The notes under the pieces were generated by a model. It was not told the origin of the DNA, searched no databases, and was given only the letters and a program-made list of their open reading frames with translations. Shown piece by piece: positions 1,269 to 47,440 of a stretch of DNA of 64,000 nt. The stretch is from sequence record MT612989.1. The stretch is one strand, 5' to 3'. Every line of letters begins with the position of its first letter. The first letter of the stretch is position 1. Both the position numbers and the translations under genes were made by a program.

Positions 1269-3284
1269 TTAGCCGATGATTTCTGCAAAGTCAGCGTCAG
1301 TTGACGTTGCTACGAAGTTCAGCGTAATGTAGTTGATTGACTTAGCAGGTTTCACGTAGATACTTGCTACAAACTCGTTTCTGTCGATGACAGACCCTGG
1401 GTTGTTTGTCTCATCACATACAACACGGAAATCGTAAATACCGCCTAGATCTTGAATGTTAGTCAAGTAAGCGTCGATTTCTGATTTGAAGCTTGAGCGT
1501 GTGAACTCATCGTTCAATTCGAATAGACGATACTTAGCAGCATCTGAGATCGCTTTCTTCAGCAAGTTGAACAGACGACGCACGTTAATGCGGTCAAATG
1601 CACTTGCTTGCTGTGTAGCAGTCTTATCACCGTATAGTACGAAGCCTTGACCTGCAAAGCCCACTACAGGGTTAATACCGATTTGATATAGCGCATCACG
1701 GTGAGCACGACGTAGATCAACTGCTAGACGGTTTACGCCCTTGATTTGACCACGATTGAAGCCCGCTGGTGACATCCAAGGTTGAGAAACTTGGTCAGTG
1801 TAAGCACATAGACCTGCAATATCACCCGCTAGAGGAACCCAACGATTGCGATCTGAGTACTTGTCGTACTGATACTTATAGTTACCGTCAACCACTGCAT
1901 AAGTCGTGCTTACGTTTAGATTGTCAGTTACAGGTTGACCGTTAGTCGGGTCGATACCCGTGCGCCAGCCTTGAATATTCGCTACTGCAACATGCGCTTG
2001 TTTGTTGATTACGTGAACACCCGGTGGCGATACGAAAACAACACAGTCTTGACGTACATTACCAACTGAGTCAATCGCGTATTTCTGAACAGTCGATGCA
2101 ATTGATAGCTCTTCTGCCGCAGCATTACCCGCAATGATCAAGTTTGTGTAAAGCACTTCTGGGTCAGATAGCATATCTAGACCAAGCATCCAGTCGTCTG
2201 CGCCAGCGTTAGCGTCGTAACCACCACCAAGATTGTATGCACCTGAGCCAGTATTCCAACCCTCTGCTATCGCAGTGATGTACGCAGAACCGCTATTTTC
2301 AAAGTACTCGTCGATGAAAATAGATTGACCGTTCACGTCTTTGTCACCTGGGTTCGTAGAAACGATGAACGCTTCTTCAACTTCACCAGATACGCGAACA
2401 ATTACAGCGTATTGGTTGCTGTTTGCAGGGCCGAAAGTGAAGTAACTAGCTAGGTTGATTGAACGAGTACCACCATCTGGGTAGATTGGTAGATCGATGT
2501 CACCTAGTGTATGACCAGCCGCGAATGCAAATGCAGTCTGATAGTCAGCGTAGTTAATCACTTCAACAGAAATGTTGTCACCGTAGCTACCAACATAACG
2601 TGCAGCAATACGAGAGAAACCTTGCTTCTCGATTAGATCAGCATATTTCAGTGCACCGCCTTCAGTTTCAATCTCTGTTAACGCGCCTGTTGACAATTCG
2701 ATATTAGGGAAGTATACTGAACCAGTATCGATAATTTCAATCGCAGAAAGTGCAATATCACCTTGAGTTGGTTGTAGTGTAACTGTACCCACGCCCGGGT
2801 AGTTCCCGTCAGCTTTAGCAGCCGCAACGATCTCTGCCGAAGGCAAGAAAATCTTAGTTGCTGCGTTGTTGTTACCCGCATCTACTTCAAGTACTTTACC
2901 TTTTTCAGTAAGCGGACCAACACCTGAGTAAGTAATCGTGATTTCATCACCAACAACACAGCCGTTTGATGCACCTAGCGTGTATTCAACAGCGTTGTAT
3001 AATGCAGTCGCGTTCTGAGCACTTGACTCATCACAGATACGCACTAGACGTAGATCGTTACCATACTTCAAGAAGTTGTTCGCAGTCATGAATGATGCTG
3101 CGGTATAGTCGTTTGGACGACCGAAAATAGTAACCAAGTCGGACTCTGAAGTTACTTGAGTGATGCTGTATGCTGGACCCCACTCAAATTTCCCCACCAT
3201 AGCAGCACGCCCTGTAGACGCACGACCGATAGCACTTGCAAGGTTAATCTCTTTATTTTCGACACCCGGAGATAAAAGAGTCAT
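1269..3284 (-). CDS. gp18: Tail sheath protein
   Basis: 671 aa; MTLLSPGVENKE, GKFEWGP, WMSPAG, FDRINVRRLF, KPAKSINYITLNF. Confidence 0.97.
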   Translation of the reverse strand: MTLLSPGVENKEINLASAIGRASTGRAAMVGKFEWGPAYSITQVTSESDLVTIFGRPNDYTAASFMTANNFLKYGNDLRLVRICDESSAQNATALYNAVEYTLGASNGCVVGDEITITYSGVGPLTEKGKVLEVDAGNNNAATKIFLPSAEIVAAAKADGNYPGVGTVTLQPTQGDIALSAIEIIDTGSVYFPNIELSTGALTEIETEGGALKYADLIEKQGFSRIAARYVGSYGDNISVEVINYADYQTAFAFAAGHTLGDIDLPIYPDGGTRSINLASYFTFGPANSNQYAVIVRVSGEVEEAFIVSTNPGDKDVNGQSIFIDEYFENSGSAYITAIAEGWNTGSGAYNLGGGYDANAGADDWMLGLDMLSDPEVLYTNLIIAGNAAAEELSIASTVQKYAIDSVGNVRQDCVVFVSPPGVHVINKQAHVAVANIQGWRTGIDPTNGQPVTDNLNVSTTYAVVDGNYKYQYDKYSDRNRWVPLAGDIAGLCAYTDQVSQPWMSPAGFNRGQIKGVNRLAVDLRRAHRDALYQIGINPVVGFAGQGFVLYGDKTATQQASAFDRINVRRLFNLLKKAISDAAKYRLFELNDEFTRSSFKSEIDAYLTNIQDLGGIYDFRVVCDETNNPGSVIDRNEFVASIYVKPAKSINYITLNFVATSTDADFAEIIG

Positions 3285-9203: not shown

Positions 9204-10886
9204 TTATACTTTTAGTACAAATGATTCATGGTCGATAGTAACATTAGCCGCTGTACTAGCCAATACTCGAATCTCACTCAAGTCATCTAGATTCGCAACG
9301 TTAGTGATTGTAACTGGAGTAACTTGGTTTGCACGAAGCGTACGTGTTTTCTCGATTGATGAGCTTGTGCCGTTATCATGATCGAAATCAATTCGAATCG
9401 TGATTGTAGTGTTTACTGGTGAAACAACAACCCAATGAATAGACATCGTTTTGCTCAATGATAGACCGTTACGTGTCAATACACCACCTGCATACGTGTA
9501 ACCACTCACGTCTGTCTCAAGATTGAATAAACTGAATACATCTGTAGGTGTAGTTGTCAAATCAACTGTACTCGGAGTATCCGAAGACAATAATGCATGA
9601 TCCAACTGTGCTTCAAGTTCCAGAACACGAGCACGCAATGTACCCACTTCGCTATCACTCTGACCAACTACAGTCAATAGACCGTCAACGTCTGCCTGAG
9701 CAGATTCAACTAAGCCACGGTTTTCTTGAATCGTGTACCATGCAGTAAATTCAACAGGGTTTGTACGCTCACCTAGACTAGACTCAAGCTGTGACACTCT
9801 GTAAGACACTGTGCCAGTTTCTGCGTCAGTAGCCCCTAAACGACCCCACAATCTATTGATATCGTCGTTAAACGTCGATAGACGAGCTTTCATGCTACCC
9901 GAGTACACGTCATCTACTGCGTATGAACCGATATCAGTTGACATTTCAATAAATAAATTAGTAACGGAGCCAATCTGTGCCTGATTATCTGCAATTGTAA
10001 CTTCATTCGCGCTAACGCGATCAAGTAGACCTGTAGTCGGTGTCTCAACTTCCTGTTGTAATAATGCAATATCTGATGCATTGTCTGAAATAGAACTTTC
10101 AGCATCATCAAGACGAAGATACACGGGACGAGCAGGGTCGGCATCTGCCGTTTCACCTAGTTCATCACGAATCTGATCAACAGAACCAACTTGCGAGTTT
10201 TGCTCTAGTTCGTATAAACGACCGTTGATTGAAAGCGGGATTGCGTTCTCGCCAATTTCAGCGTTGATCGTAGCTGTTTTGTTGTACAGATCTTCAATCT
10301 GATATTTTATACCAGTTGGGTTTGTACTAGGCGATGGGTTGCCGTTGACATCGTAGTTGCGGTCATTACCAATACGACGCTTGATGAAATATAGATCTTT
10401 ACGAACTGTATCATTGTTTTCAACTTCGTTTGGAATATCTAGGCTGTTACGAACACCAATATCTGCTTCAACATCTTCGATGCCTTTATGCAGACCTGTT
10501 GCAAGTACGTCAACACTACTCGGTACACCGATGTCATCAATGACGTTAGTCATTTGACCTTCAAGTACATCAATATCAAACTCGTTTTGTGATACACGAG
10601 AACCCAAGTTAGCGTCACCGCCACCTGTCAGTTCATTAACAGTATCAACAAGTTCTTCAATTGCGCTTTGCTGTGCTTTTGTGTTGTAATGAGAGTTTAG
10701 AACGTTTTCTTGAATCTGTACTCCTGCGCGGTTTAATACACCGTCTGAAGTCGTGTCACCAGAAGCACCGTTGATGCTTTCACCGTTCTTAGCCCAATTG
10801 ATTCGAGTCTGATCGGGACGTTGAGAAGGATCTGGTTGACCATTTACATATCTAAGCTCTTCAATGATAGGCTTTTGAATTGTCAT
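9204..10886 (-). CDS. wac: Fibritin (whisker)
   Basis: RINWAKNGE, GVLNRAGVQIQEN N-terminus, segmented coiled coil; position between 12 and 13. Confidence 0.88.
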   Translation of the reverse strand: MTIQKPIIEELRYVNGQPDPSQRPDQTRINWAKNGESINGASGDTTSDGVLNRAGVQIQENVLNSHYNTKAQQSAIEELVDTVNELTGGGDANLGSRVSQNEFDIDVLEGQMTNVIDDIGVPSSVDVLATGLHKGIEDVEADIGVRNSLDIPNEVENNDTVRKDLYFIKRRIGNDRNYDVNGNPSPSTNPTGIKYQIEDLYNKTATINAEIGENAIPLSINGRLYELEQNSQVGSVDQIRDELGETADADPARPVYLRLDDAESSISDNASDIALLQQEVETPTTGLLDRVSANEVTIADNQAQIGSVTNLFIEMSTDIGSYAVDDVYSGSMKARLSTFNDDINRLWGRLGATDAETGTVSYRVSQLESSLGERTNPVEFTAWYTIQENRGLVESAQADVDGLLTVVGQSDSEVGTLRARVLELEAQLDHALLSSDTPSTVDLTTTPTDVFSLFNLETDVSGYTYAGGVLTRNGLSLSKTMSIHWVVVSPVNTTITIRIDFDHDNGTSSSIEKTRTLRANQVTPVTITNVANLDDLSEIRVLASTAANVTIDHESFVLKV

Positions 10887-37772: not shown

Positions 37773-38039
37773 ATGTCACAACAAACTGCTGAACAAGTAA
37801 TCGAACAGAAAGACGCACAAATCAAAGATCTTAAAGTGCGTACCTTTGACCTACAAGAGACTCTTCAAGAAGAGCGCAATTCTTTTGGTCAGTTCGTGGG
37901 TGTACTAGCTCAACTACTCGATTTCGATCAGACGCAAGCAAGTTCTCTACAGAACTACGTTGACGAAATCGCAATTCTAACCGGTAAAGCTGAACGTCCT
38001 GCTGAAGGCGACGGCGAACAAGAAAAAGACGCTGAATAA
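37773..38039 (+). CDS. gp57A: Tail fibre assembly chaperone
   Basis: 88 aa coiled coil, LKVRTFDLQE; beside genes 1 and 57B. Confidence 0.75.
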   Translation: MSQQTAEQVIEQKDAQIKDLKVRTFDLQETLQEERNSFGQFVGVLAQLLDFDQTQASSLQNYVDEIAILTGKAERPAEGDGEQEKDAE

Positions 38040-38494
38040 TGAAACTATCTAAGTTCCTTGAAAGTCAGGGAACTTACGTTGGTATTAGATTAGACGAGGC
38101 GAGTAAGCAAGAGTTAGTTCGATTGCAGAAAACGCTTCGTCTAAAAAATCCGTTAGAACCAGATAAATTTCACGTGACTGTGCTTTATAGTCGTAAGCAA
38201 ATTGATGTACCTGTTGTCGATACCACTTTCGTTGCTACTGTTGAACATATCGACTGTTGGAAAACGCAAGACGGCAAATATGCAGTTGTTGCTAAGATGG
38301 TATGTCCAGAACTTGTAGAACGTCACGATGATCTTATCTCTATCGGTGGTACTCACGACTACCCTGACTATACCCCTCACGTTACGTTGTCTTATGACGA
38401 CGCGATCACACCTATGCCCGTCAACGCTGAAGTTCGGCTTGTTGATGAATATCTTGAACCACTTGATTTAAATTGGGTTGATAGTAATGACTGA
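38039..38494 (+). CDS. gp57B: 2H phosphoesterase, gp57B/Acb1 anti-CBASS nuclease family
   Basis: Two HxT motifs (FHVTVLYSR, PHVTLSY), GGTHDYPDYTPH, syntenic with 57A. Confidence 0.88.
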   Translation: MKLSKFLESQGTYVGIRLDEASKQELVRLQKTLRLKNPLEPDKFHVTVLYSRKQIDVPVVDTTFVATVEHIDCWKTQDGKYAVVAKMVCPELVERHDDLISIGGTHDYPDYTPHVTLSYDDAITPMPVNAEVRLVDEYLEPLDLNWVDSND

Positions 38495-38741
38495 TTTATC
38501 TACTGAAGCAGTATTAAAGAAGTACAATGAAGCTCCCGAAACTCTAACTACTGAAGAGAACGTTGTATTATTGACGTATATCATCGGTATGCAGACCGAT
38601 CAGATTGCTTTACTTAAAGAGAACAACAAACTTTACGATAAAGCTATCACTGAGCTTCAACAAGCTGTATCTCAGCTTCAAATCAAGCACGCTGCGCTTG
38701 AACGAGGTGAGACAGAAAGCGGTATCATTCTTTCAGTATAA
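38487..38741 (+). CDS. Hypothetical coiled-coil protein
   Basis: 84 aa from ATG 38487, overlaps 57B stop. Confidence 0.7.
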   Translation: MTDLSTEAVLKKYNEAPETLTTEENVVLLTYIIGMQTDQIALLKENNKLYDKAITELQQAVSQLQIKHAALERGETESGIILSV

Positions 38742-38758
38742 AAACTTTCAAAAAGTTG

Positions 38759-38879
38759 TTGACTTATTCTGAAAAGCATGTAGAATGTATTTCATCGAGT
38801 CGAGAGACAGAACACAAACTTTCAACTCGATGAAATATTTGAAAAAAGTTGTTGACTTACACTGAAATGATGTTAAGAT
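38759..38879 (+). promoter_or_regulatory. Two tandem early promoters heading the tRNA/ncRNA cluster
   Basis: AAAAAGTTG-TTGACT..TAGAAT (38759-38786) and AAAAAAGTTG-TTGACT..TAAGAT (38852-38879), with A-tract UP elements. Confidence 0.8.
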
Positions 38880-38887
38880 TAACACAG

Positions 38888-38996
38888 TTGATTAAGCGAG
38901 CTAAGTTCATCGTTCTCGCCTCTTATTGAAGATGAACAATATTGATTAAGCAGACTAAACTCATCGTTTCTGCCTCTTCTCTGAAGATGAGTAATA
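38888..38996 (+). ncRNA. Two tandem H-type pseudoknot units
   Basis: 54/55-nt repeats; P1 GCGAG/CTCGC vs GCAGA/TCTGC, P2 GTTCATC/GATGAAC vs ACTCATC/GATGAGT. Confidence 0.7.
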
Positions 38997-39144
38997 TTTT
39001 AAATGTGCGTTAGCCGCAATGAATACATGGAGCCAGTATACGTTCTGGCGTGCAGGGATACTCTTAGCGGACGAATTCTCAATCAAAAACTAGCTGAGTT
39101 AAAATTCGCTCAGTCGGCGTGCAAGTAGCGCACATTTAAAATAT
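38994..39144 (+). ncRNA. Structured RNA closed by 16-bp stem
   Basis: ATATTTTAAATGTGCG/CGCACATTTAAAATAT; internal GCCAG/CTGGC hairpin; no ORF. Confidence 0.6.
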
Positions 39145-39159
39145 CGAGAGTACATTGGT

Positions 39160-39282
39160 CGAGTGTTGGTGTAGTGGCAGCACACGTAGCATACTGTAAT
39201 CAGACATGATTATATTCAGCAACCAATTTACGCATATCATAGGGAGATCGTGGGAACGGTTCGATTCCGTTACACTCGACCA
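39160..39282 (+). ncRNA. tRNA-like RNA A with enlarged anticodon arm carrying the CWGCA motif
   Basis: Acceptor CGAGTGT/ACACTCG-A-CCA, D arm, T arm AACGG-TTCGATT-CCGTT; motif G39208, CAGCAA 39217. Confidence 0.8.
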
Positions 39283-39315
39283 ATGTACTCTCACTAACAA
39301 AGCGAGGTGGACAAT

Positions 39316-39471
39316 TTGATTGTATATCTTCTCGCACTAGTATTCATCGTCCTCTTTGCCTTGGACATTGAAGAAGAAAAGGTGCGCATTCATACTTTTG
39401 CGCTAATCACATGCGAACGGGTCATTCATCCCGTAATTAAAGCGCACGATTCCAGATTGTGTTTTGATTAG
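39316..39471 (+). CDS. Possible small membrane protein (51 aa, TTG start)
   Basis: GAGG RBS, N-terminal hydrophobic run LIVYLLALVFIVLFAL. Confidence 0.4.
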   Translation: MIVYLLALVFIVLFALDIEEEKVRIHTFALITCERVIHPVIKAHDSRLCFD

Positions 39472-39541
39472 CTAAGGCAAATATAACTAGAGGATTTTTG
39501 GTGCTTGTGGTTAATCACAAGCACTCTCAAGAACATATTGA

Positions 39542-39663
39542 GCAGGGTTGGTGTAGTGGCTAGCACACGTAGCATAAACGCAAGCTGTTAAGTTTGTATT
39601 CTGCAATCAATTTAGCATATCATTTCCAAGATCGTGACGCAGGTTCGAATCCTGCACCCTGCT
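39542..39663 (+). ncRNA. tRNA-like RNA B (paralogue of A)
   Basis: Acceptor GCAGGGT/ACCCTGC, T arm GCAGG-TTCGAAT-CCTGC, no encoded CCA; motif G39592, CTGCAA 39601. Confidence 0.8.
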
Positions 39664-39681
39664 CAATATGTTTTTACATTG

Positions 39682-39794
39682 GTGAAGTTAGTTCAGTTGG
39701 TTAGAATGCCGGCCAAAAAAACGAAGTCTGATAAGATTTCATTCTGCATTCACATGCACGCCGGAGGTCGCAGGTTCGAGTCCTGCACTTCACC
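39682..39794 (+). ncRNA. tRNA-like RNA C (tRNA-Asp-like body, anticodon replaced by motif insert)
   Basis: GTTCAGTTGGTTAGAATGCCGGCC...CACGCCGGAGGTCGCAGGTTCGAGTCC; motif G39735, CTGCAT 39744. Confidence 0.8.
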
Positions 39795-39804
39795 TTCAAA
39801 TTCT

Positions 39805-39929
39805 GGAGAGTTAGCTCAGTCTGGTAGAGCAAAAGAATGTTAAAGAATACTGACAAGCATTCATGCTGCAAACCTTAATAACTAGGTAAATCTTTTTGTC
39901 ACGTGGTTCAAATCCCGTACTCTCCACCA
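39805..39929 (+). ncRNA. tRNA-like RNA D with motif insert
   Basis: GGAGAGT/ACTCTCC-A-CCA, canonical D arm, AAAGA/TCTTT stem; motif G39857, CTGCAA 39866. Confidence 0.8.
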
Positions 39930-40313: not shown

Positions 40314-40391
40314 GGCCCTATAGCTCAACACGGTTAGAGCAACCGACTCATAATCGGTAGGTTACAGGTTCGAGTCCTGTTGGGGTCACCA
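40314..40391 (+). tRNA. tRNA CAT, Ile2-like (or Met)
   Basis: Cloverleaf, loop CTCATAA, GGCCC acceptor resembling ileX, CCA. Confidence 0.85.
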
Positions 40392-40411
40392 AAATAAATT
40401 GAAAAAAGTTG

Positions 40412-40440
40412 TTGACAGACGTTTCATCAACGTGTAGTAT
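40412..40440 (+). promoter_or_regulatory. Early promoter
   Basis: A tract, TTGACA-17-TAGTAT. Confidence 0.8.
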
Positions 40441-40470
40441 ACACATTATCAACTACACGAGGAAAACATT

Positions 40471-40701
40471 ATGTCACATAAATTGCTAGTTATCACATCA
40501 ATGCACGGTTGCTACGTCGATTACGATTTCAGAACTGAAATGTTTGACAGATACATGTGTGATGTTGTGATTCCGAACGACTCTGTTGTTTTGTACTCGG
40601 GTACAGTTTCAATAGATGAAATTCGAGCAGTTGCGAACGAATGTTACGCTGACATCAAGATTGAAGAAGTCAGTGATGATGTTTTTGACAGCTATCTTTA
40701 A
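40471..40701 (+). CDS. Hypothetical protein (76 aa)
   Basis: GAGG RBS, downstream of promoter. Confidence 0.75.
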   Translation: MSHKLLVITSMHGCYVDYDFRTEMFDRYMCDVVIPNDSVVLYSGTVSIDEIRAVANECYADIKIEEVSDDVFDSYL

Positions 40702-40705
40702 AAAT

Positions 40706-40945
40706 GCCGCTAACTGGCGTACAATACACAGTGTATTCCCAACATTAGTGCAGACGTAGGCTCGCAACCTACGTTGGTACCGAATCACTGGGACCGAGTA
40801 GAAAGTGCATGTGAGATGTCGAAGTCTTGTATGTAGAAATAACGCTCGGCTGCTCTGAAATGCTGATTAGCTCTTACTTCGAAACTCTAATTGGGTGGAA
40901 GAGGTGTTGTGTTTGACGTGTGTTCGATTCACACGAGCGGCGCCA
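40706..40945 (+). ncRNA. 240-nt RNA with tRNA-like ends (tmRNA-like topology)
   Basis: GCCGCT/AGCGGC acceptor, G-CCA end, T arm GTGTG-TTCGATT-CACAC, ACAATAC/GTGTTGT closing helix. Confidence 0.65.
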
Positions 40946-40958
40946 AGAGGAAATTATA

Positions 40959-41480
40959 ATGAAACCATTGAAGTTCGTTGAGGCGTTCTCTAAAGAAGAA
41001 CGTGCTGCTATGACGATTGAAGAACGTAGCAGACTTCGTAAAATATATAACGAACGCTATCAAGAGTATGTTGATAAGTACATCAATGTATTCACTCGAA
41101 AAGACTTTCGAAGAGAGCGTTGCTGGGTTATTCTTGCACGATGTAAAAAGACTGGTGAAATCATCGGTCGAATTGAAAATAGTTTTAGTATGGGATGGTC
41201 TAAAGAACGTGTTCGTGTTATTCGACCGTATCTAAACGGTAATTTCACGGGCGATGATCGCTTCTCTAAAGCTGAGTACAACAAAGCGTGTGCTGAGTAC
41301 ATAACTCATCATGAGAAACAAGTAAAGTCTCTCAGAGAAGCTTACAAAGACACTCACGACGTTTTCTTATCTCGTGTGGGTAGTAAGAACTGTCCTGTTT
41401 CTATTGATTGGGATACGTATTACAGTAAAAAAGACAAACGAAACTTTGAATATCGAAATTTGAAATTCAAAGTTAAATAA
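40959..41480 (+). CDS. Hypothetical basic protein (173 aa)
   Basis: GAGG RBS, ATG 40959. Confidence 0.75.
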   Translation: MKPLKFVEAFSKEERAAMTIEERSRLRKIYNERYQEYVDKYINVFTRKDFRRERCWVILARCKKTGEIIGRIENSFSMGWSKERVRVIRPYLNGNFTGDDRFSKAEYNKACAEYITHHEKQVKSLREAYKDTHDVFLSRVGSKNCPVSIDWDTYYSKKDKRNFEYRNLKFKVK

Positions 41481-41485
41481 TTCAT

Positions 41486-41601
41486 AGTCGGGTAGCTCAG
41501 TGGTAGAGCACGAAGAATGATACTGACAAGTATCGCTCCAGCACTCCTTCAATTGCCTGTTAAGCACGTGGTCGCTGGTTCGAATCCAGCCCCGACTACC
41601 A
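41486..41601 (+). ncRNA. tRNA-like RNA E: GTT anticodon arm interrupted by 41-nt motif insert
   Basis: AGTCGGG/CCCGACT-A-CCA; CG[insert]TGC-CTGTTAA-GCACG; motif G41530, CAGCAC 41539. Confidence 0.8.
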
Positions 41602-41627
41602 TTTTTGATAAACTAGTGAGGTATAAC

Positions 41628-41864
41628 ATGAGCGGAACATTTAATATCAACAAAACGTTACTGACTCCGAAACAATTGCGCAATCTAACAGATGAGCGTC
41701 TGAATGAATATCGCAAGTCGTTTCGTAAGCCTCTTGGGTTTTTGAAGCATCTGAACGATACAAACGAATTGACTTCAGATCAGCACAAGAAATTCGTTGA
41801 GCTTAATAAGCACTACAACGACGAAATTCTTGCTGAAATGAACAAGCGAAAACACTTAGGTTAA
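41628..41864 (+). CDS. Hypothetical protein (78 aa)
   Basis: GAGG RBS, ATG 41628; the track start lies inside RNA E. Confidence 0.7.
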   Translation: MSGTFNINKTLLTPKQLRNLTDERLNEYRKSFRKPLGFLKHLNDTNELTSDQHKKFVELNKHYNDEILAEMNKRKHLG

Positions 41865-41991
41865 TAAAATCGCAGAAAATTGATAATTTTTTTCAATTTT
41901 CTGCGAAAATACCGCAAATCGTCAGATTTAGTGTTATAAGTACTATAAAGAAACAAAACAAATTTTAATTTTTATTTCAAGAGAGCATTCA

Positions 41992-42105
41992 ATGACGCAT
42001 TCGTTTACACATTCATCTGAGACATTACGCAGCGATTTTCTGCGCTCAGAATTCGTGTATCTAGCGAATCCGATTGCGAACCAGAAGTGGGATACCCTCT
42101 TGTAG
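41992..42105 (+). CDS. Possible 37-aa peptide MTHSFTHSSETLRS...
   Basis: AGAGAG RBS-like, followed by terminator. Confidence 0.35.
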   Translation: MTHSFTHSSETLRSDFLRSEFVYLANPIANQKWDTLL

Positions 42106-42134
42106 TCCGATAGTATAACATAGAAGTATACTTG

Positions 42135-42158
42135 AGGACGCAAATAGCGTCCTTTTTT
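42135..42158 (+). terminator. Rho-independent terminator
   Basis: AGGACGC/GCGTCCT then T tract. Confidence 0.8.
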
Positions 42159-42235
42159 ATGGGCGTAAGAAAGTTAAGAAATTTTGTTTAACGTACTTTG
42201 ATTACAGAGTATGATAAACAAAGTTAAAGAACAAA

Positions 42236-42309
42236 CGGGACGTGGCGTAAAGGTAGCGTTCATGCTTTGGGAGCATGTGGTAAGAGTTCGAGTCTCTTCG
42301 TCCCGACCA
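42236..42309 (+). tRNA. tRNA-Pro(TGG)
   Basis: CATGC-TTTGGGA-GCATG, CCA. Confidence 0.92.
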
Positions 42310-42318
42310 ATTTAAAAT

Positions 42319-42395
42319 CCGTGACTAGCTCAATCTGGTAGAGTACTCCGTTTGGGGCGGAGAAGTTAAGCGTTCGAATCGCTTGTCACGGACCA
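42319..42395 (+). tRNA. tRNA-Pro(TGG), second copy
   Basis: CTCCG-TTTGGGG-CGGAG, CCA. Confidence 0.9.
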
Positions 42396-42403
42396 GTTTT
42401 AAT

Positions 42404-42479
42404 GCCCGATTAGCTCAATTGGAAGAGCAGCGCCCTACGAAGGCGAAGGTTACAAGTTCGAATCTTGTATTGGGTGCCA
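42404..42479 (+). tRNA. tRNA-Arg(ACG)
   Basis: Loop CTACGAA, CCA. Confidence 0.92.
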
Positions 42480-42682
42480 GTTAGTGTTGTTTGATTGAAG
42501 CTCGCTTTCGCACATTCCCGAAACTGCTTCTACGAATTGATACGCTTAGGACCGTATCTCGTTAAGTACTGTCGAGATGATAGAATTTAACGAACTTTTT
42601 CATAAATTAGTGTTTATGATGTCTTGAGCGAGTGTTAATATTAACACATAGAAAATGAAAACGTTAAGTTCTTCAAAATAAA

Positions 42683-42814
42683 TTCAAAAAGATGTTTACA
42701 ACGATATAAACATCGTGTACAATGAAGAAAAGCGAAACATCATTCAAAATCGAATGAAAAGTTTTTCAAAAAGATGTTTACAACGATAAAAACATCATGT
42801 ACAATGAAGAAAAG
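42683..42814 (+). promoter_or_regulatory. Duplicated 50-bp early promoter unit
   Basis: 42683-42732 and 42765-42814 differ at 2 positions; TTTACA-17-TACAAT. Confidence 0.85.
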
Positions 42815-42832
42815 AAGTTTACAAAATTTAAT

Positions 42833-42909
42833 GCGCAAGTAGCCCAATTGGCAGAGGCACTGGTCTTAGAAACCAGAAGTTAAGAGTTCGAATCTCTTCT
42901 TGCGTACCA
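42833..42909 (+). tRNA. tRNA-Leu(TAG), short variable loop
   Basis: CTGGT-CTTAGAA-ACCAG, CCA. Confidence 0.9.
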
Positions 42910-42910
42910 A

Positions 42911-42985
42911 GCACCCTTAGCTTATCAGGAAAAGCGGCGGATTGAAGTCCCGCAGTGCTCGGTTCGATTCCGAGGGGGTGCACCA
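42911..42985 (+). tRNA. tRNA-Phe(GAA)
   Basis: Loop TTGAAGT, CCA. Confidence 0.85.
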
Positions 42986-43074
42986 TATTATAGCTTGTTT
43001 GTAAGAGTTAAATCAAGCAAGGGGTTTTAGTTTTGGGTTATTTAGCAAACGCTCTTAACGTGAAAATCAAATCT

Positions 43075-43149
43075 GGGTCGTTCGTATAACGGTAGTACAT
43101 CTGGCTTTTAACCAGAACGGTGAGAGTTCGAATCTCTTGCGACCCACCA
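43075..43149 (+). tRNA. tRNA-Lys(TTT)
   Basis: TCTGG-CTTTTAA-CCAGA, CCA. Confidence 0.92.
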
Positions 43150-43160
43150 GATTTTATAAT

Positions 43161-43237
43161 GCGTCGGTAGCTCATCATGGAAGAGCAGGGAGCTTTTAAC
43201 TCTCAGGTGTCTGGTTCGAGTCCAGGGCGGCGTACCA
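43161..43237 (+). tRNA. tRNA-Lys(TTT), second copy
   Basis: GGGAG-CTTTTAA-CTCTC, CCA. Confidence 0.92.
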
Positions 43238-43300
43238 AATTAGATACATTGTGTATCGCTTTGCAAGTTAGATAGCTTGCAAATCAATATACAATTTAAT

Positions 43301-43375
43301 TCTCCCGTGGACTAACGGTAGGTCATCACCCTTTCAAGGTGAAGTGCGCGAGTTCGAATCTCGTCGGGAGAACCA
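43301..43375 (+). tRNA. tRNA-Glu(TTC)
   Basis: TCACC-CTTTCAA-GGTGA, CCA. Confidence 0.92.
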
Positions 43376-43381
43376 AATTAC

Positions 43382-43467
43382 GGAGCGTACGTCTCAAGGT
43401 GAGACAGGGGACTGTAAATCCCTGACCCTTAACGGGTAGAGAGGTTCGATTCCTCTACGCTCCACCA
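43382..43467 (+). tRNA. tRNA-Tyr(GTA)
   Basis: Loop CTGTAAA, long variable arm, CCA. Confidence 0.92.
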
Positions 43468-43471
43468 GTTT

Positions 43472-43560
43472 TAGCTTGCATACTGCAATTTAACTTAATC
43501 TATTGATCGCTCGGCGAACTCAGTTCAGACAGCGATAAACAGACCAAAGAACGCAAGCTG
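43472..43560 (+). ncRNA. Inter-tRNA RNA K with open-form CWGCA motif
   Basis: GCTTGC-ATA-CTGCAA ... GCAAGC-TG. Confidence 0.65.
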
Positions 43561-43569
43561 TTGAATAAT

Positions 43570-43646
43570 TGCGGGGTAGAGAAGTGGTCATCTCGTCGGT
43601 CTCATAAGCCGGAGAACGCTGGTTCGAATCCAGCCCCACGCAACCA
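43570..43646 (+). tRNA. tRNA-fMet-like (CAT), atypical
   Basis: fMet-like body, loop CTCATAA; GGT/GCC instead of GGG/CCC; extra nt in acceptor 3' strand. Confidence 0.8.
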
Positions 43647-43692
43647 AATTTATTTCGACTAAATATTGTTTTACGCAATAAGGAAAATTACA

Positions 43693-43935
43693 ATGAAAAC
43701 ATTTGATGAATTCATTACCGAGTCGAAAGATGTTACTTTCGGAGTTTCTGGCTCACTTTTTAGTGGTGCAATGGATAGAGAGAGACATCGAAACATGATG
43801 CAAAAACTTGGCGCTGTTAGAGACACCAAATCAAAATCACAAGATAATGTTTGGGTTGTCAGTCAAGCGAATGCTGATGCAGTTGAAGAATATCTTAGTC
43901 AGTTTGATAAGCTGATGTGGGGTAGACACAAATAA
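43693..43935 (+). CDS. Probable internal head protein (80 aa)
   Basis: N-terminus MKTFDEFITE resembles T4 capsid-targeting sequence; ACTAAATA at 43658-43665. Confidence 0.65.
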   Translation: MKTFDEFITESKDVTFGVSGSLFSGAMDRERHRNMMQKLGAVRDTKSKSQDNVWVVSQANADAVEEYLSQFDKLMWGRHK

Positions 43936-43941
43936 TTAATT

Positions 43942-44040
43942 GGAAGGCTTAGCCGAGAGATTCTGGGTAGCGGCAACGGTCTTGAAAACCGTCGGTCACC
44001 GGGAGGTGATGTTAGGGTTCGAATCCCTAGTCTTCCGCCA
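43942..44040 (+). tRNA. tRNA-Ser(TGA), enlarged D loop
   Basis: ACGGT-CTTGAAA-ACCGT, long variable arm, G-CCA. Confidence 0.9.
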
Positions 44041-44104
44041 ATTAGTTAACCGGGAAGTTTAGTCACTTAACCGATTAACACGAGCACTGAAATGTGCTCA
44101 CTTT

Positions 44105-44178
44105 AGTCCCTTAGCTCAACGGTAGAGCGTGCGACCGATAATCGCTTGGTAAGAGTTCGATTCTCTTAGGGACTACCA
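44105..44178 (+). tRNA. tRNA-Ile(GAT)
   Basis: Loop CCGATAA (C33), CCA. Confidence 0.88.
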
Positions 44179-44184
44179 GATTTT

Positions 44185-44258
44185 AGGGGCATGATGTAAA
44201 GGCAGCATGACGGATTCCAAACCCGTTCGTTAGAGTTCGAATCTCTATGCCCCTGCCA
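44185..44258 (+). tRNA. tRNA-Trp(CCA)
   Basis: Loop TTCCAAA, G-CCA. Confidence 0.9.
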
Positions 44259-44262
44259 GTTT

Positions 44263-44322
44263 AAGTAATCTTACAGCAAACAATACAAAACTTTTATTTG
44301 GAAAAAGCAAAAAGGATTACTG
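44263..44322 (+). ncRNA. Inter-tRNA RNA F with open-form motif
   Basis: AA-GTAATC-TTA-CAGCAA ... GATTAC-TG. Confidence 0.7.
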
Positions 44323-44333
44323 TTTAAATTCAA

Positions 44334-44408
44334 GGGTGTGTAACTCAGAGGCAGAGTAGTCGGCTGTTAACCGACAAGTCGAGATTTCGAAATTCTCCAC
44401 GCCCGCCA
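44334..44408 (+). tRNA. tRNA-Asn(GTT)
   Basis: GTCGG-CTGTTAA-CCGAC, G-CCA. Confidence 0.9.
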
Positions 44409-44409
44409 T

Positions 44410-44485
44410 GCTTCATTAACTCAGTTGGTAGAGTGTCTGACTGTTAATCAGAGAGTCGTTGGTTCGAGTCCAACATGAAGCGCCA
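44410..44485 (+). tRNA. tRNA-Asn(GTT), second copy
   Basis: TCTGA-CTGTTAA-TCAGA, G-CCA. Confidence 0.92.
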
Positions 44486-44553
44486 AATTCGGAGAGTCAC
44501 TACCGTTAAGTGTGAACTTGAAAAACAAAGCAACTACTTTAAGTTGTCTTTGG

Positions 44554-44629
44554 GGAGCCGAGGTGTAAGTGGTTGCATGTCTCCCTGTCACGGAGAAGGT
44601 AGCGGGTTCGAAACCCGTCGGTTCCGCCA
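44554..44629 (+). tRNA. tRNA-Asp(GTC)
   Basis: TCTCC-CTGTCAC-GGAGA, G-CCA. Confidence 0.92.
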
Positions 44630-44648
44630 AAGATAATTTAAGAACAAT

Positions 44649-44722
44649 TGGGGATTGGTGTAAAGGCAGCATAACGTACTTTGAATGCGTTGGTATCAGT
44701 TCGAATCTGTTATCCCCAGCCA
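44649..44722 (+). tRNA. tRNA-Gln(TTG)
   Basis: ACGTA-CTTTGAA-TGCGT, G-CCA. Confidence 0.9.
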
Positions 44723-44729
44723 AATACCG

Positions 44730-44845
44730 AAGAGTGTTTTCAGCAAACAATTTACTAATATTCTTATCGGAAAGAAATGTTTAGGGTTCGATTCCCTTTC
44801 AGTGTTGGTATCACTGGTCTGGACGACGCTAGTAATAACACTCAG
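44730..44845 (+). ncRNA. RNA G: motif stem at termini enclosing a T arm and closed acceptor-like hairpin (Y-RNA/YrlA-like)
   Basis: AA-GAGTGT-TTT-CAGCAA ... AGGG-TTCGATT-CCCT, TCAGTG/CACTGG ... ACACTC-AG. Confidence 0.65.
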
Positions 44846-44849
44846 TAAC

Positions 44850-44925
44850 GCCCTGATAGCACAACTGGCAGTGCAGCTCACTTGTAATGAGCAGGTTCGC
44901 GGTTCGAATCCGTGTCAGGGCACCA
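44850..44925 (+). tRNA. tRNA-Thr(TGT)
   Basis: GCTCA-CTTGTAA-TGAGC, CCA. Confidence 0.92.
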
Positions 44926-44949
44926 TTTTCAAACAACTGCGAGAATAAC

Positions 44950-45159
44950 ATGAACTATATTTCTGTATGGTGTGAATATGACATTGGTGGGGATTTCGGT
45001 GGCAACAATAACGAAGATGTTTTTTCCGTTAGTGAAGAATTATCTAATGAAGAAGTTGAAGCAAAAGTTGCTGAATATATTTCTGACATTGTTAGTGAGC
45101 CGATTGAAGAACTTGAAGGTTTATACGGTTGGGAATATATTTCAATCACACAGTTGTAA
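44950..45159 (+). CDS. Hypothetical acidic protein (69 aa)
   Basis: GAGA RBS, ATG 44950. Confidence 0.7.
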   Translation: MNYISVWCEYDIGGDFGGNNNEDVFSVSEELSNEEVEAKVAEYISDIVSEPIEELEGLYGWEYISITQL

Positions 45160-45166
45160 AAAATAT

Positions 45167-45241
45167 GGGCCGTTAGCTTAATTGGGAAAGCGCCTCACTT
45201 GCAATGAGGAAGATAGGGTTCGACTCCCTGCGTGTCCACCA
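45167..45241 (+). tRNA. tRNA-Ala(TGC), irregular acceptor stem
   Basis: CCTCA-CTTGCAA-TGAGG, G3-U70 retained, CCA. Confidence 0.8.
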
Positions 45242-45315
45242 AATTTCGAACACATGAGCGTAGACTCTCTTTACTACCATCGTCTACACTAGTTCATGGT
45301 TCGAATCTTTTCAAT

Positions 45316-45391
45316 GCGCTGTTAGCTCAATTGGAAGAGCACGTCCCTTCTAAGGATGGGGTTATGAGTTCGAATCTCATACGGCGTGCCA
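45316..45391 (+). tRNA. tRNA-Arg(TCT)
   Basis: CGTCC-CTTCTAA-GGATG, CCA. Confidence 0.92.
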
Positions 45392-45450
45392 TATTAAGCT
45401 CTTATCATGCGACGAATGATACTTTGCTTCGGCATATCACGAGCATGGTG

Positions 45451-45568
45451 AGAGAGACAATATACAGCAAACAATTGAAATTACTTAAAAGAAGTGATGA
45501 TCTTAACCTGGGCTGATTTTAACCTGAGCTTGCTTAGGCGCAGCTTGAAAGGAAAGATTCTCTCTGTC
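45451..45568 (+). ncRNA. RNA I with open-form motif (less regular stem)
   Basis: AGAGAGACAATATA-CAGCAA ... ATTCTCTCTGTC. Confidence 0.5.
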
Positions 45569-45574
45569 TAGAAA

Positions 45575-45747
45575 TAGTCAGATAGGCGCGTCGCTGAAAC
45601 AGACGATATTTGCTTGTTGAGAATCAATAAGCTAGTCAACTCCGATTTATGCAAAAGACGAAAAAACACTTCGGTATTGTCTGTACTTAATTCGTCGGAA
45701 ACGACACTGTAGCCGAAAGGCAAGTTTACTAACTTAGTTGTTAGTCG
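45575..45747 (+). ncRNA. Multi-hairpin region with GNRA loops
   Basis: GCTTGTTGA/TCAATAAGC, GTCG-GAAA-CGAC, GCC-GAAA-GGC, ACTAAC/GTTAGT. Confidence 0.45.
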
Positions 45748-45914
45748 TGATACAGGAAGTATCATGTGGTATTATTATGAACGTTTCTAGTCATCGTCAT
45801 GTAAAACAATCAAAACTAAGCAGAGGTAACAGTACCCACTATGTGGTTCCTCACTCAGACCATGAATATATGGTGTCAGCCAGTGTGCGATTAAATGAGT
45901 TAATTACTGCAATT

Positions 45915-45990
45915 GGTGATGTAGCTCAAGTGGCAGAGCAACGCTTTCATACGGCGTAAGATCCGATTTCGAGTATCGGTGTCACCTCCA
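45915..45990 (+). tRNA. Atypical tRNA with CAT anticodon
   Basis: ACGCT-TTCATAC-GGCGT, U73-CCA. Confidence 0.75.
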
Positions 45991-46010
45991 AATTCAAAAA
46001 CAAAGAGGTT

Positions 46011-46175
46011 ACGAAGCATGACTACTTTACACTAAGCAAGGGCAACATACGCGATAAAATTCGATATGTTGAAAAATGTCTCGCGAATGAGACCAACCCG
46101 TTCTTTATAAGAACACTTACTGTAGAGCTTACGAATCTACGTGCAATACGTGATTTGTTCGACGCTTCAGATTAA
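46011..46175 (+). CDS. 54-codon ORF with ACG at start position (non-canonical start or pseudogene)
   Basis: AGAGG RBS just upstream of ACG; open frame KHDYFTLSKGNIRDKIRYVEKCLANE... Confidence 0.4.
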   Translation, partial: TKHDYFTLSKGNIRDKIRYVEKCLANETNPFFIRTLTVELTNLRAIRDLFDASD

Positions 46176-46179
46176 CAAT

Positions 46180-46253
46180 GCGGGTATGATGTAATGGTAG
46201 CATGACGTCCTTCCAAGTCGTTCGTCTCGGTTCGAGTCCGTGTACCCGCTCCA
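46180..46253 (+). tRNA. tRNA-Gly(TCC)
   Basis: Loop CTTCCAA, U-CCA. Confidence 0.9.
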
Positions 46254-46259
46254 AATTTT

Positions 46260-46333
46260 GGTCCCTTAGTATAATGGCAGTACGTCTCTTTTACACAGAG
46301 AAAGAAGTGGCTCGATTCCACTAGGGACTACCA
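46260..46333 (+). tRNA. tRNA-Val(TAC)
   Basis: TCTCT-TTTACAC-AGAGA, CCA. Confidence 0.9.
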
Positions 46334-46356
46334 TTCTTTATGATGAGAAATAAATT

Positions 46357-46596
46357 ATGACGCCTGCATTACTTGAAACTCATGAATACGTAAACCACAA
46401 CCAAATCGAAAAGCTACAGCAAATGGACAGACTTATGTTTGATTGTTGGCGTGCTGGGTATAAACGTGGCAAGATTTTAGAGCTTGCATTGTCGATTGAG
46501 TCTTCAACAACCGAAGCAGACATCGAAATTTATTTCAAAAATATGTTTACAAGAGAACTATCGGCTGATAGTATCTACTTAAAGAAAACTGTATGA
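46357..46596 (+). CDS. Hypothetical protein (79 aa)
   Basis: ORF between tRNA-Val and tRNA-His, GAGA RBS. Confidence 0.7.
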   Translation: MTPALLETHEYVNHNQIEKLQQMDRLMFDCWRAGYKRGKILELALSIESSTTEADIEIYFKNMFTRELSADSIYLKKTV

Positions 46597-46747
46597 CGGA
46601 GTAGTGCTCCGACCGAATGACACACGCAAATGAGTCCGGTTGACAAACGTTATATGTCCCAAAGTATTGCAGGTAGCGACGGCGGTGTTGCTAGTAGATT
46701 TATCTATTTCTCCAAGACATAATGCAAGCTTTTAAAGTGTACTTTGG

Positions 46748-46825
46748 TGTGGCAGTGGGTGAAGTGGAAATACCCCCGGGTTGTGATTCCGGAAGATGCG
46801 GGTTCGATCCCCGTCTGTCACCCCA
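46748..46825 (+). tRNA. tRNA-His(GTG), U at -1
   Basis: CCGGG-TTGTGAT-TCCGG, C73-CCA. Confidence 0.9.
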
Positions 46826-46837
46826 AAGTACATTTAT

Positions 46838-46911
46838 GCTCGAATCGTATAATGGCAGTATGACGGATTGCAAATCCGCAGGTCAGGGTTCGATTCCCTG
46901 TTCGAGCTCCA
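46838..46911 (+). tRNA. tRNA-Cys(GCA)
   Basis: Loop TTGCAAA, U73-CCA. Confidence 0.9.
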
Positions 46912-46913
46912 AT

Positions 46914-46990
46914 GCGCACGTGGTCCAATTGGCAGAGGCATGAGGCTTAAAATCTCAGGGATGGCGGTTCGAATCCGCCCGTGCGTACCA
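46914..46990 (+). tRNA. tRNA-Leu(TAA), short variable loop
   Basis: TGAGG-CTTAAAA-TCTCA, CCA. Confidence 0.9.
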
Positions 46991-47003
46991 AATTCTAGCA
47001 TAA

Positions 47004-47095
47004 GCCGCGTTCTATACGAAGCTAGACTACCGCCGTTGAAAAACGGTCTCAGCCGAGCGAAAGCTGACAGGTGTTAGGGATTAAAGAGTCGCGGC
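47004..47095 (+). ncRNA. Structured inter-tRNA RNA
   Basis: GCCGCG/CGCGGC closing stem, CCGTT-GAAA-AACGG, TCAGC/GCTGA. Confidence 0.5.
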
Positions 47096-47106
47096 AGTTT
47101 ATTCAA

Positions 47107-47183
47107 GCCCAACTAGTCCAATTGGCAGAGGCACTAGTTTCAAACACTAGGAGTTCCGAGTTCGAATCTCGGGTTGGGCACCA
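47107..47183 (+). tRNA. tRNA-Leu(CAA), short variable loop
   Basis: CTAGT-TTCAAAC-ACTAG, CCA. Confidence 0.9.
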
Positions 47184-47279
47184 AATTCACTTAGCAACGC
47201 GAATCGAAAGAGAGTGGATAGACCTGCTAAGAGTCCCGCTAGGTCTTTAAATTATCTAAAGTGGATCTGCGAAGCGCGT

Positions 47280-47314
47280 GGCACACGTCAGCAATAAGAG
47301 CAAATATGTGTCTG
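47280..47314 (+). ncRNA. Minimal open-form motif J
   Basis: GGCACA-CGT-CAGCAA ... TGTGTC-TG. Confidence 0.55.
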
Positions 47315-47351
47315 AGCATGAGAGCAGCATGCCATTAATTGATGAGACGTT

Positions 47352-47440
47352 GGAAGCATGGTCTAAAGGTATGACAGCACCCTGCTAAGGTGTCGGACGT
47401 TAATAGCGTTCTCTGGGTTCGATTCCCAGTGCTTCCGCCA
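47352..47440 (+). tRNA. tRNA-Ser(GCT)
   Basis: GCACC-CTGCTAA-GGTGT, long variable arm, G-CCA. Confidence 0.92.

Follow-up and report, generated by a model that had tools for sequence, protein, structure and literature searches.

Type III antitoxins are encoded by arrays of direct repeats of 31-62 nt, which are found in approximately 1.9-5.6 copies (PMC3401426). The tenpI repeats measure 39-57 nt (mean 50.9) and are present in 1.9-3.0 copies, and tenpIN occurs in Vibrionales (PMC3401426). In tenpI, there are two non-identical repeats, each of them with a central H-type pseudoknot; the toxin is bound by the single-stranded flanks of the repeat, and one repeat is enough (PMC13682666). In phages, described pseudoknotted RNAs include: (i) theta ribozymes, which are small, lie in phage non-coding DNA and are physically linked to tRNAs (PMC10879173); and (ii) the operator of the T4 gene 32 mRNA, whose 5' end forms an H-type pseudoknot with A/U-rich single-stranded RNA behind it (PMC3014915).

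The locus described here comes from the KVP40-like Schizotequatrovirus vB_ValM_R11Z (MT612989.1), a Vibrio phage related to T4, with which the 601 bases surrounding the units show 100% identity. The window, i.e., the whole stretch of 64,000 nt (64 kb) of this record that was analysed, contains a pair of tandem pseudoknots, and these head an array that is composed of about 28 tRNAs as well as structured and tRNA-like RNAs. Upstream of this array, the gene order is 1 (dNMP kinase), 57A, 57B and then a small ORF, and the order 1-57A-57B is the synteny found ahead of the T4 tRNA cluster too. Downstream of the units there are more than 8 kb of RNA, mostly untranslated, with 28 tRNA genes located from 40314 to 47440 (ARAGORN). 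The features of the locus are the following (positions are those of the window):

38039-38494, + strand: homologue of gene 57B, matching Pfam Acb1 (anti-CBASS nuclease) with E = 8e-46
38759-38786, + strand: promoter 1, with TTGACT, a 16-nt spacer and TAGAAT; 10/12 consensus matches; kept in all relatives
38788-38837, + strand: hairpin of 16 pairs which begins at about +1 of promoter 1; two compensatory pairs
38852-38879, + strand: promoter 2, sigma-70-like, with TTGACT, a 16-nt spacer and TG-TAAGAT
38888-38941, + strand: unit 1, 54 nt; covariance model score of 61.5 bits
38896-38900 with 38915-38919, + strand: P1 of unit 1, GCGAG/CUCGC, 5 bp
38905-38911 with 38931-38937, + strand: P2 of unit 1, GUUCAUC/GAUGAAC, 7 bp
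38888-38895, 38901-38904, 38912-38914, 38920-38930 and 38938-38941, + strand: unpaired parts of unit 1, in this order tail UUGAUUAA, L1 CUAA, L2 GUU, L3 CUCUUAUUGAA and 3' tail
38942-38996, + strand: unit 2, 55 nt; covariance model score of 82.3 bits
38950-38954 with 38969-38973, + strand: P1 of unit 2, GCAGA/UCUGC, 5 bp
38959-38965 with 38986-38992, + strand: P2 of unit 2, ACUCAUC/GAUGAGU, 7 bp
38942-38949, 38955-38958, 38966-38968, 38974-38985 and 38993-38996, + strand: unpaired parts of unit 2, in this order tail, L1, L2, L3 and 3' tail
38997-39146, + strand: structured RNA of about 145 nt, directly 3' of unit 2; fold z-score of -2.7
39146-39292, 39530-39670, 39682-39794, 39805-39926 and 41486-41598, + strand: tRNA-like RNAs of 113-150 nt

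The sequence agrees with an earlier, sequence-only reading of this DNA, in which tandem repeats in the order P1-P2-P1'-P2' had been described. This strand order is a true crossing and, in consequence, an H-type pseudoknot is formed in each unit. The pseudoknot proper takes up around 47 nt, to which a conserved single-stranded GAUUAA leader must be added. The stems of unit 1 and unit 2 are different and orthogonal; tail UUGAUUAA, L1 CUAA and L2 GUU are common to both. That the linkers are kept, as had been pointed out for the two repeats, applies to the other units as well: the GAUUAA tail, L1 CUAR, L2 GUU and the L3 ends (CUCUU..UGAA) are near-invariant, so that approximately 22 invariant unpaired nucleotides within about 50 nt are surrounded by covarying stems. 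P1, at -4 to -5 kcal/mol, and P2, at -6 to -8 kcal/mol, are each favourable when taken alone and are predicted to be moderately stable. P2 may be extended by G.A, U-A and U.G contacts of GUU with UGAA.

A lone pseudoknot of 5+7 bp is not significant, since a loose descriptor of it (G-U pairs allowed) gives about 120 overlapping matches on the + strand and 87 on the - strand of the 64-kb window. The pattern that includes the conserved loops has 2 matches in the window versus 0.00 expected (100 shuffles). With the covariance model, the next best match in the window after the two units scores 14 bits, and further copies were found neither there nor in the KVP40 tRNA region or the marine contigs dealt with below. 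Between unit 1 and unit 2, 10 of the 24 stem bases differ, all of them in a compensatory way (five pairs), as opposed to 3 of the 31 non-stem bases (Fisher p = 0.009); that is, the changes concentrate in the stems and spare the loops.

For the comparison among orthologues, 15 distinct phage units from 21 loci were aligned with the marine unit, and the resulting 16 distinct sequences represent two lineages and roughly nine independent compensatory events, counted by eye. All the pair cells (189/189) of these 16 units, from phages and metagenome, are standard; in shifted-register controls, 25-55% of the cells pair (25-56% when the 3' partners of the phage units are slid by 1-3 columns). Changes on both sides affect 7 of the 12 pairs (4/5 in P1 and 3/7 in P2), and the covariation score is 0.565 versus 0.226 in column shuffles, a value reached by 0/500 of them. 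Phage relatives have, for instance, the P1 variants GCGAA/UUCGC, ACAGA/UCUGU and GCAGA/UCUGU (the last one with a G-U pair) and the P2 variant UCUUAUC/GAUAAGA. The covariation initially seen in both stems between the two repeats is thus borne out and strengthened by the orthologues, among which the stems are kept by compensatory changes and none is broken without compensation. The tandem units are a real, conserved RNA motif. This RNA was assigned to the + strand because of the promoters and of the G-U pair, which is present in phage 1.081.O and on the + strand only. Nested minimum-free-energy folding of the 115-nt region is no better than that of shuffles (z = -0.5) and, therefore, the support for the motif is comparative rather than thermodynamic. 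A description of it was found neither in Rfam nor in the searchable literature: within 38700-39500, no Rfam family reaches its gathering score and, at E <= 10, none is matched other than chance snoRNA/miRNA families.

Alternative natures of the locus were considered. A coding region was rejected, given that the tiny ORFs differ among phages and that their frames are broken by 1-2-nt indels in L1, L3 and the linkers. A DNA operator or palindrome was also rejected, as the inverted repeats interleave and change in sequence yet stay complementary, with G-T on one strand only. In public records, small hypothetical ORFs on either strand are annotated over the promoters, the hairpin and the units (1539-1763 of locus L002, KVP40.0320; 1094-1213 of L005; 302-610 of L056), and the pattern of indels and covariation suggests that they are spurious.

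Promoters 1 and 2 are paralogous near-duplicates whose upstream halves align almost base for base. The -10 hexamer of promoter 2 (TAAGAT) ends at 38879, 9 nt ahead of unit 1, in accordance with the distance of about 9 nt given in the sequence-only reading, and this spacing is conserved in all KVP40-like loci. Judging from the promoter consensus, transcription from promoter 2 is predicted to start near A38886 and, by analogy with T4, promoter 2 is taken to be an early promoter. The two public runs retrieved consist of DNA-like contigs and yield no transcript ends. The former placement of the units at the 5' end of the tRNA transcript stands only in part: they are promoter-proximal according to the promoter consensus, but the first canonical tRNA is 1.3 kb downstream and the marine unit is internal. 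No terminator is predicted after the repeats, and neither a conserved ORF nor a ribosome-binding site was found downstream of the units. The hairpin at 38788-38837 is conserved and has G-U pairs on the + strand only; its arms and P2 of unit 1 have UUCAUCG/CGAUGAA in common.

The structured RNA at 38997-39146 is a module that comes next in this non-coding array and lies outside the pseudoknot motif. It has 41 predicted pairs, 21 of which show compensatory changes (9 phages), and a terminal stem formed by AAAUGUGCG/CGCACAUUU. It has no Rfam match, and its identification as T4 rnaC/rnaD was rejected, since it is similar to neither. The tRNA-like RNAs contain D- and T-arm-like parts and an insertion of around 40 nt, and in at least the first of them (39146-39292) the terminal stem is extended to about 20 bp (fold z-score of -6.2). 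Several are annotated as "tRNA-Pseudo" in KVP40, and as tRNA-Cys, tRNA-Phe or tRNA-Asn in other records. In phages phi-Grn1, V05, V07 and VH7D, approximately 250-370 extra bases are present within the equivalent of 38700-39300 (the blastn match comes in 2-3 pieces) and, in consequence, the number of tRNA-like modules varies among close relatives; phi-Grn1 annotates an extra tRNA-OTHER in that stretch. Likewise, a relative with about 91% identity (public run X2) carries 127 unrelated bases in place of a 121-base stretch of the window (39481-39603), which overlaps one of the tRNA-like RNAs.

As far as distribution is concerned, the phage collection contains one locus per genome in 50/50 KVP40-like records (84-100% identity), in all cases around 9 nt behind a sigma-70-like promoter. 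Two copies are present in 49 of these 50 records, and phage 1.081.O has one unit. In IMG/VR, two scans with conserved-core patterns detected true units only in the KVP40 and VH7D records, their other matches being chance ones, mostly in coding DNA. A stricter third scan returned the KVP40 and VH7D records only, and a looser fourth pattern gave 65 stretches, of which, beyond the KVP40 record, 0/64 new ones scored with the covariance model. The search via neighbouring proteins led only to KVP40 and VH7D again. Among bacteria, a scan of one genome per species in 185,579 species, performed, like the collection scans in general, with exact patterns that more diverged members would escape, retrieved only one MAG contig, with the marine version of the unit. 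The motif was found in none of the Vibrio genomes (one per species, exact pattern), plasmids gave no blastn match to the units, and the T4 tRNA region has no copy of the unit.

The marine homologue is a diverged single unit that the metagenome scan detected in two Tara Oceans contigs. A contig of 75 kb, assigned by binning to a Chloroflexota MAG, and one further assembly carry the same unit; metagenome and genome scans together yielded one marine lineage only. The stems of the marine unit are GCACA/UGUGC (P1) and GAUUAUC/GAUAAUC (P2), and its unpaired parts keep UUGAUUAA, CUAG, GUU and CUCUU..UUGAA; in other words, with respect to its nearest relatives, 2/5 of the P1 pairs and 3/7 of the P2 pairs are changed, while the tail, L1, L2 and the L3 ends are kept. 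It lies 9 nt upstream of a tRNA-Asn(GUU), and a closed structured RNA of about 110 nt ends 3 nt ahead of it. As the unit is found around 150 nt after a promoter-like site and, hence, is internal rather than at the predicted 5' end of the transcript, a 5'-terminal position does not form part of the definition of the motif. The marine contigs, which are ORFan-rich and have about 30% GC, share only the unit and the tRNA-Asn with the window (tblastx gives nothing at 1e-3). To judge from the comparison of both loci, the pseudoknot is a portable and discrete module associated with transcription units for tRNAs and ncRNAs.

The observations on marine contigs refer to 10365-10520 (- strand) of L080, 1333-2616 of L184, and L186. 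In a near-identical marine contig, a gene for an IS605 TnpB is found downstream. Besides, a marine neighbour protein is distantly related (47% identity over 41% of the query) to a protein on a contig of 282 kb that consists of small ORFans on the same strand and is perhaps a large (jumbo) phage.

Regarding function, selection acts on the sequence of the loops and tail as well as on pairing and, therefore, a plain structural spacer is insufficient; the partner that fits such selection could be (i) a protein; (ii) a small molecule; or (iii) the catalytic fold of the RNA itself. The role ranked first, though less likely than not, is that the folded pseudoknot is itself the functional product, namely a protein ligand or decoy made early in infection. 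Large amounts of pseudoknot RNA would be made as infection begins, the unit would be freed from its precursor by the normal tRNA-processing nucleases, and the freed pseudoknot would serve as ligand or decoy of a protein that reads the invariant loops and the single-stranded tails. In its most specific form, the decoy would imitate a type III (TenpI-like) antitoxin and maintain the inhibition of a host abortive-infection RNase of the ToxN/TenpN type once host transcription has been shut off. The strong early promoter would supply the dose and timing, as massive early transcription could replace the decaying host antitoxin; the embedding in a tRNA precursor would give processing for free; and the differing stems would allow both units to fold independently on one transcript, with less recombination between repeats. 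According to Blower et al. 2012 (PLoS Genetics), phages can reportedly carry antitoxin mimics. The match of the 57B homologue to Acb1 places an anti-defence gene just upstream of the non-coding RNA array, which is weak support for the decoy since T4 has the same synteny. The scarcity of the motif in bacteria (one MAG contig) and its absence from plasmids in the above scans count against mimicry, because the mimicked host antitoxin should resemble its mimic.

Covarying stems around some 22 invariant unpaired nucleotides in about 50 nt are also a typical signature of small ribozymes, and it is conceivable, albeit rather unlikely, that the units represent a new small self-cleaving class which cuts polycistronic precursors of ncRNAs and tRNAs at one defined position within or beside the conserved tail. 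Such a cut would define RNA ends, as HDV-like theta ribozymes do at the 3' ends of phage tRNAs. The presence of the module in two unrelated genomes without a shared protein fits a partner-free RNA, both contexts are non-coding arrays that need RNA ends (as the marine unit, squeezed between a structured RNA and tRNA-Asn, illustrates), and tRNA-linked ribozymes have a precedent in phages (PMC10879173). Nevertheless, no Rfam ribozyme family is matched even at E <= 10, and the tandem pair, right behind its promoter, leaves little upstream RNA to free. Each unit consists of two helices with 3 nt (GUU) between the 5' strand of P2 and the 3' strand of P1, and can form neither the P3/P1.1 core of HDV nor the P2/P3 of pistol. 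In theta and other HDV-like ribozymes, a nested double pseudoknot (P1, P1.1, P2 and P3) is found together with a catalytic C in J4/2, and theta ribozymes are located 3' of the tRNA, whereas the units, with their two helices, have no room for P3 and L3 and lie 5' of the tRNA. An HDV-like or theta fold was ruled out given that only three nucleotides separate those strands and that there is no Rfam HDV match, and pistol, twister, hammerhead and hatchet have no Rfam match at E <= 10; CUGAAGA, in unit 2 only and inside a covarying helix, resembles the hammerhead CUGANGA box. A mechanical action is unlikely: a knot behind a single-stranded landing pad would stop the 5' scanning of RNase E or 3'-to-5' exonucleases and thereby protect or shape the precursor, in a way comparable to the exonuclease-resistant pseudoknots of flavivirus 3' UTRs. 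Such a nuclease roadblock would agree with the location of the units, in 50 phages, where the precursor is predicted to begin, with tandem copies that could give redundancy, with conserved loops that could encode a tight tertiary fold and with the fact that promoter 1 transcripts likewise start with a stable hairpin. On the other hand, 8-10 nt of unpaired leader stand ahead of P1, and 5'-terminal stabilisers lose their protection with more than a few unpaired 5' nucleotides. An ompA-type 5' stabiliser was rejected on account of the approximately 10 unpaired nt from the predicted start (~38886) to P1 (38896) and of the internal marine copy. The latter speaks against a roadblock in general, too, as do the moderate stability of the predicted helices, the intrinsic stability of the downstream products (tRNAs and closed structured RNAs), and the host, since Vibrio is a gammaproteobacterium with no known 5'-to-3' exonuclease. 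Flavivirus xrRNAs are similar in their tandem duplicated compact pseudoknots and conserved tertiary-contact nucleotides, but differ by a three-way junction ring fold, by Xrn1 and by belonging to another domain of life.

If the partner were a small molecule, the units would be a tandem aptamer that tunes elongation or processing of the tRNA/ncRNA operon, which seems quite improbable. The H-type topology is that of preQ1-I, SAM-II/V, fluoride and guanidine-III, with conserved nucleotides at the helix junction; a universal ligand would explain the conservation across unrelated genomes; and tandem aptamers are known. The pseudoknot riboswitches (preQ1-I, SAM-II/SAM-V, fluoride, guanidine-III) resemble the units in their 35-55 nt, covarying stems, conserved junction/loop nucleotides and occasional tandem arrangement, but their L3 is A-rich and that of the units pyrimidine-rich. 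Moreover, no Rfam riboswitch reaches its gathering score or even E <= 10 on 38700-39500 (the models of preQ1-I/II/III, SAM-II, SAM-V, fluoride, guanidine-III and NAD-II give no match there), an expression platform in the form of a terminator, a ribosome-binding site or a regulated ORF is lacking, and there are only 9 nt between the marine unit and its tRNA. A conventional riboswitch leader was discarded, in that no terminator, ribosome-binding site or conserved ORF follows and a structured RNA or tRNA comes next. Long untranslated RNA is a natural target of Rho, and the more than 8 kb of it downstream of the units, together with their promoter-proximal location in all KVP40-like phages, would suit an antitermination RNA of the put or EAR kind that binds RNA polymerase and makes transcription of the array resistant to Rho and to intrinsic terminators. 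This is, however, very improbable: neither EAR nor any other Rfam family is matched, put RNAs fold as paired stem-loops instead of pseudoknots, the marine unit is followed by one tRNA only, and T4 has the same synteny without the element. Like the gene 32 operator, the units are H-type pseudoknots predicted at the start of a transcript in the T4 family, but they are not upstream of gene 32 and regulate no coding sequence. A gene 32 operator, which lies in the gene 32 leader with an A/U-rich tract up to the ribosome-binding site of that gene, was rejected, as KVP40 gene 32 is elsewhere (positions 2260-3168 of the KVP40 record) and its 56-nt leader has no such pseudoknot.

There is some chance, although not a high one, that the unit is the first of a new class of functional RNAs, either a self-cleaving ribozyme of about 50 nt with which phages process ncRNA/tRNA arrays or an RNA-only anti-defence decoy located in phage tRNA operons, and a cassette that moves between unrelated marine phages. 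If the units are the protein decoy proposed above, directed at a host RNase or another defence protein, they would constitute a natural RNA-only counter-defence in tRNA operons and add to the idea of phage tRNA clusters as anti-defence islands; if they are a ribozyme or an aptamer, they would constitute a new class. The comparative support is unusually clean for so short an RNA with no Rfam family, and the element is a compact pseudoknot suited to structural work. Phages of the KVP40 group have been studied well, both as models and for aquaculture therapy, yet in their records this locus is unannotated or lies under doubtful small ORFs. In any case, 38750-39300 deserves annotation as a non-coding RNA array, whichever function holds.

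Returning to the type III antitoxins, to which the decoy in its most specific form would be related, several differences can be listed. Type III repeats have a terminator and the gene of a ToxN, CptN or TenpN endoribonuclease behind them, and they are cut into single repeats by the cognate toxin, which they inhibit. At this locus there is no terminator and no ToxN, CptN or TenpN gene downstream, both 1.081.O and the marine contigs have a single copy of the unit, and the module sits in tRNA/ncRNA operons. No toxin gene was found near the phage units (Pfam and PADLOC, 7 neighbouring ORFs) or near the marine unit (Pfam and PHROGs on the marine ORFs), a toxin search by PDB sequence was negative, and the model of a neighbouring ORF of 173 aa (pLDDT 82.5) matches none of the PDB folds at E <= 0.001. 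The TenpI/CptI subtype has a long A-rich loop that packs on S1, a 1-nt L1, and S1 longer than S2; here, L3 is CU-rich (CUCUU..UGAA), L1 CUAR has 4 nt, and S1 has 5 bp versus 7 bp of S2. Due to the lack of a terminator, of a toxin gene and of a bacterial or plasmid counterpart, and to the CU-rich loop, the unit is not filed as a type III antitoxin, yet by analogy it may work like one. The resemblance includes: (i) tandem non-identical repeats of 54 + 55 nt in about 2 copies, both values in range; (ii) an H-type pseudoknot per repeat, with the unpaired GAUUAA tail as the single-stranded end; and (iii) a predicted strong promoter that drives the repeats. Among the systems compared, the architecture of the units is closest to that of the TenpI-type type III antitoxins.
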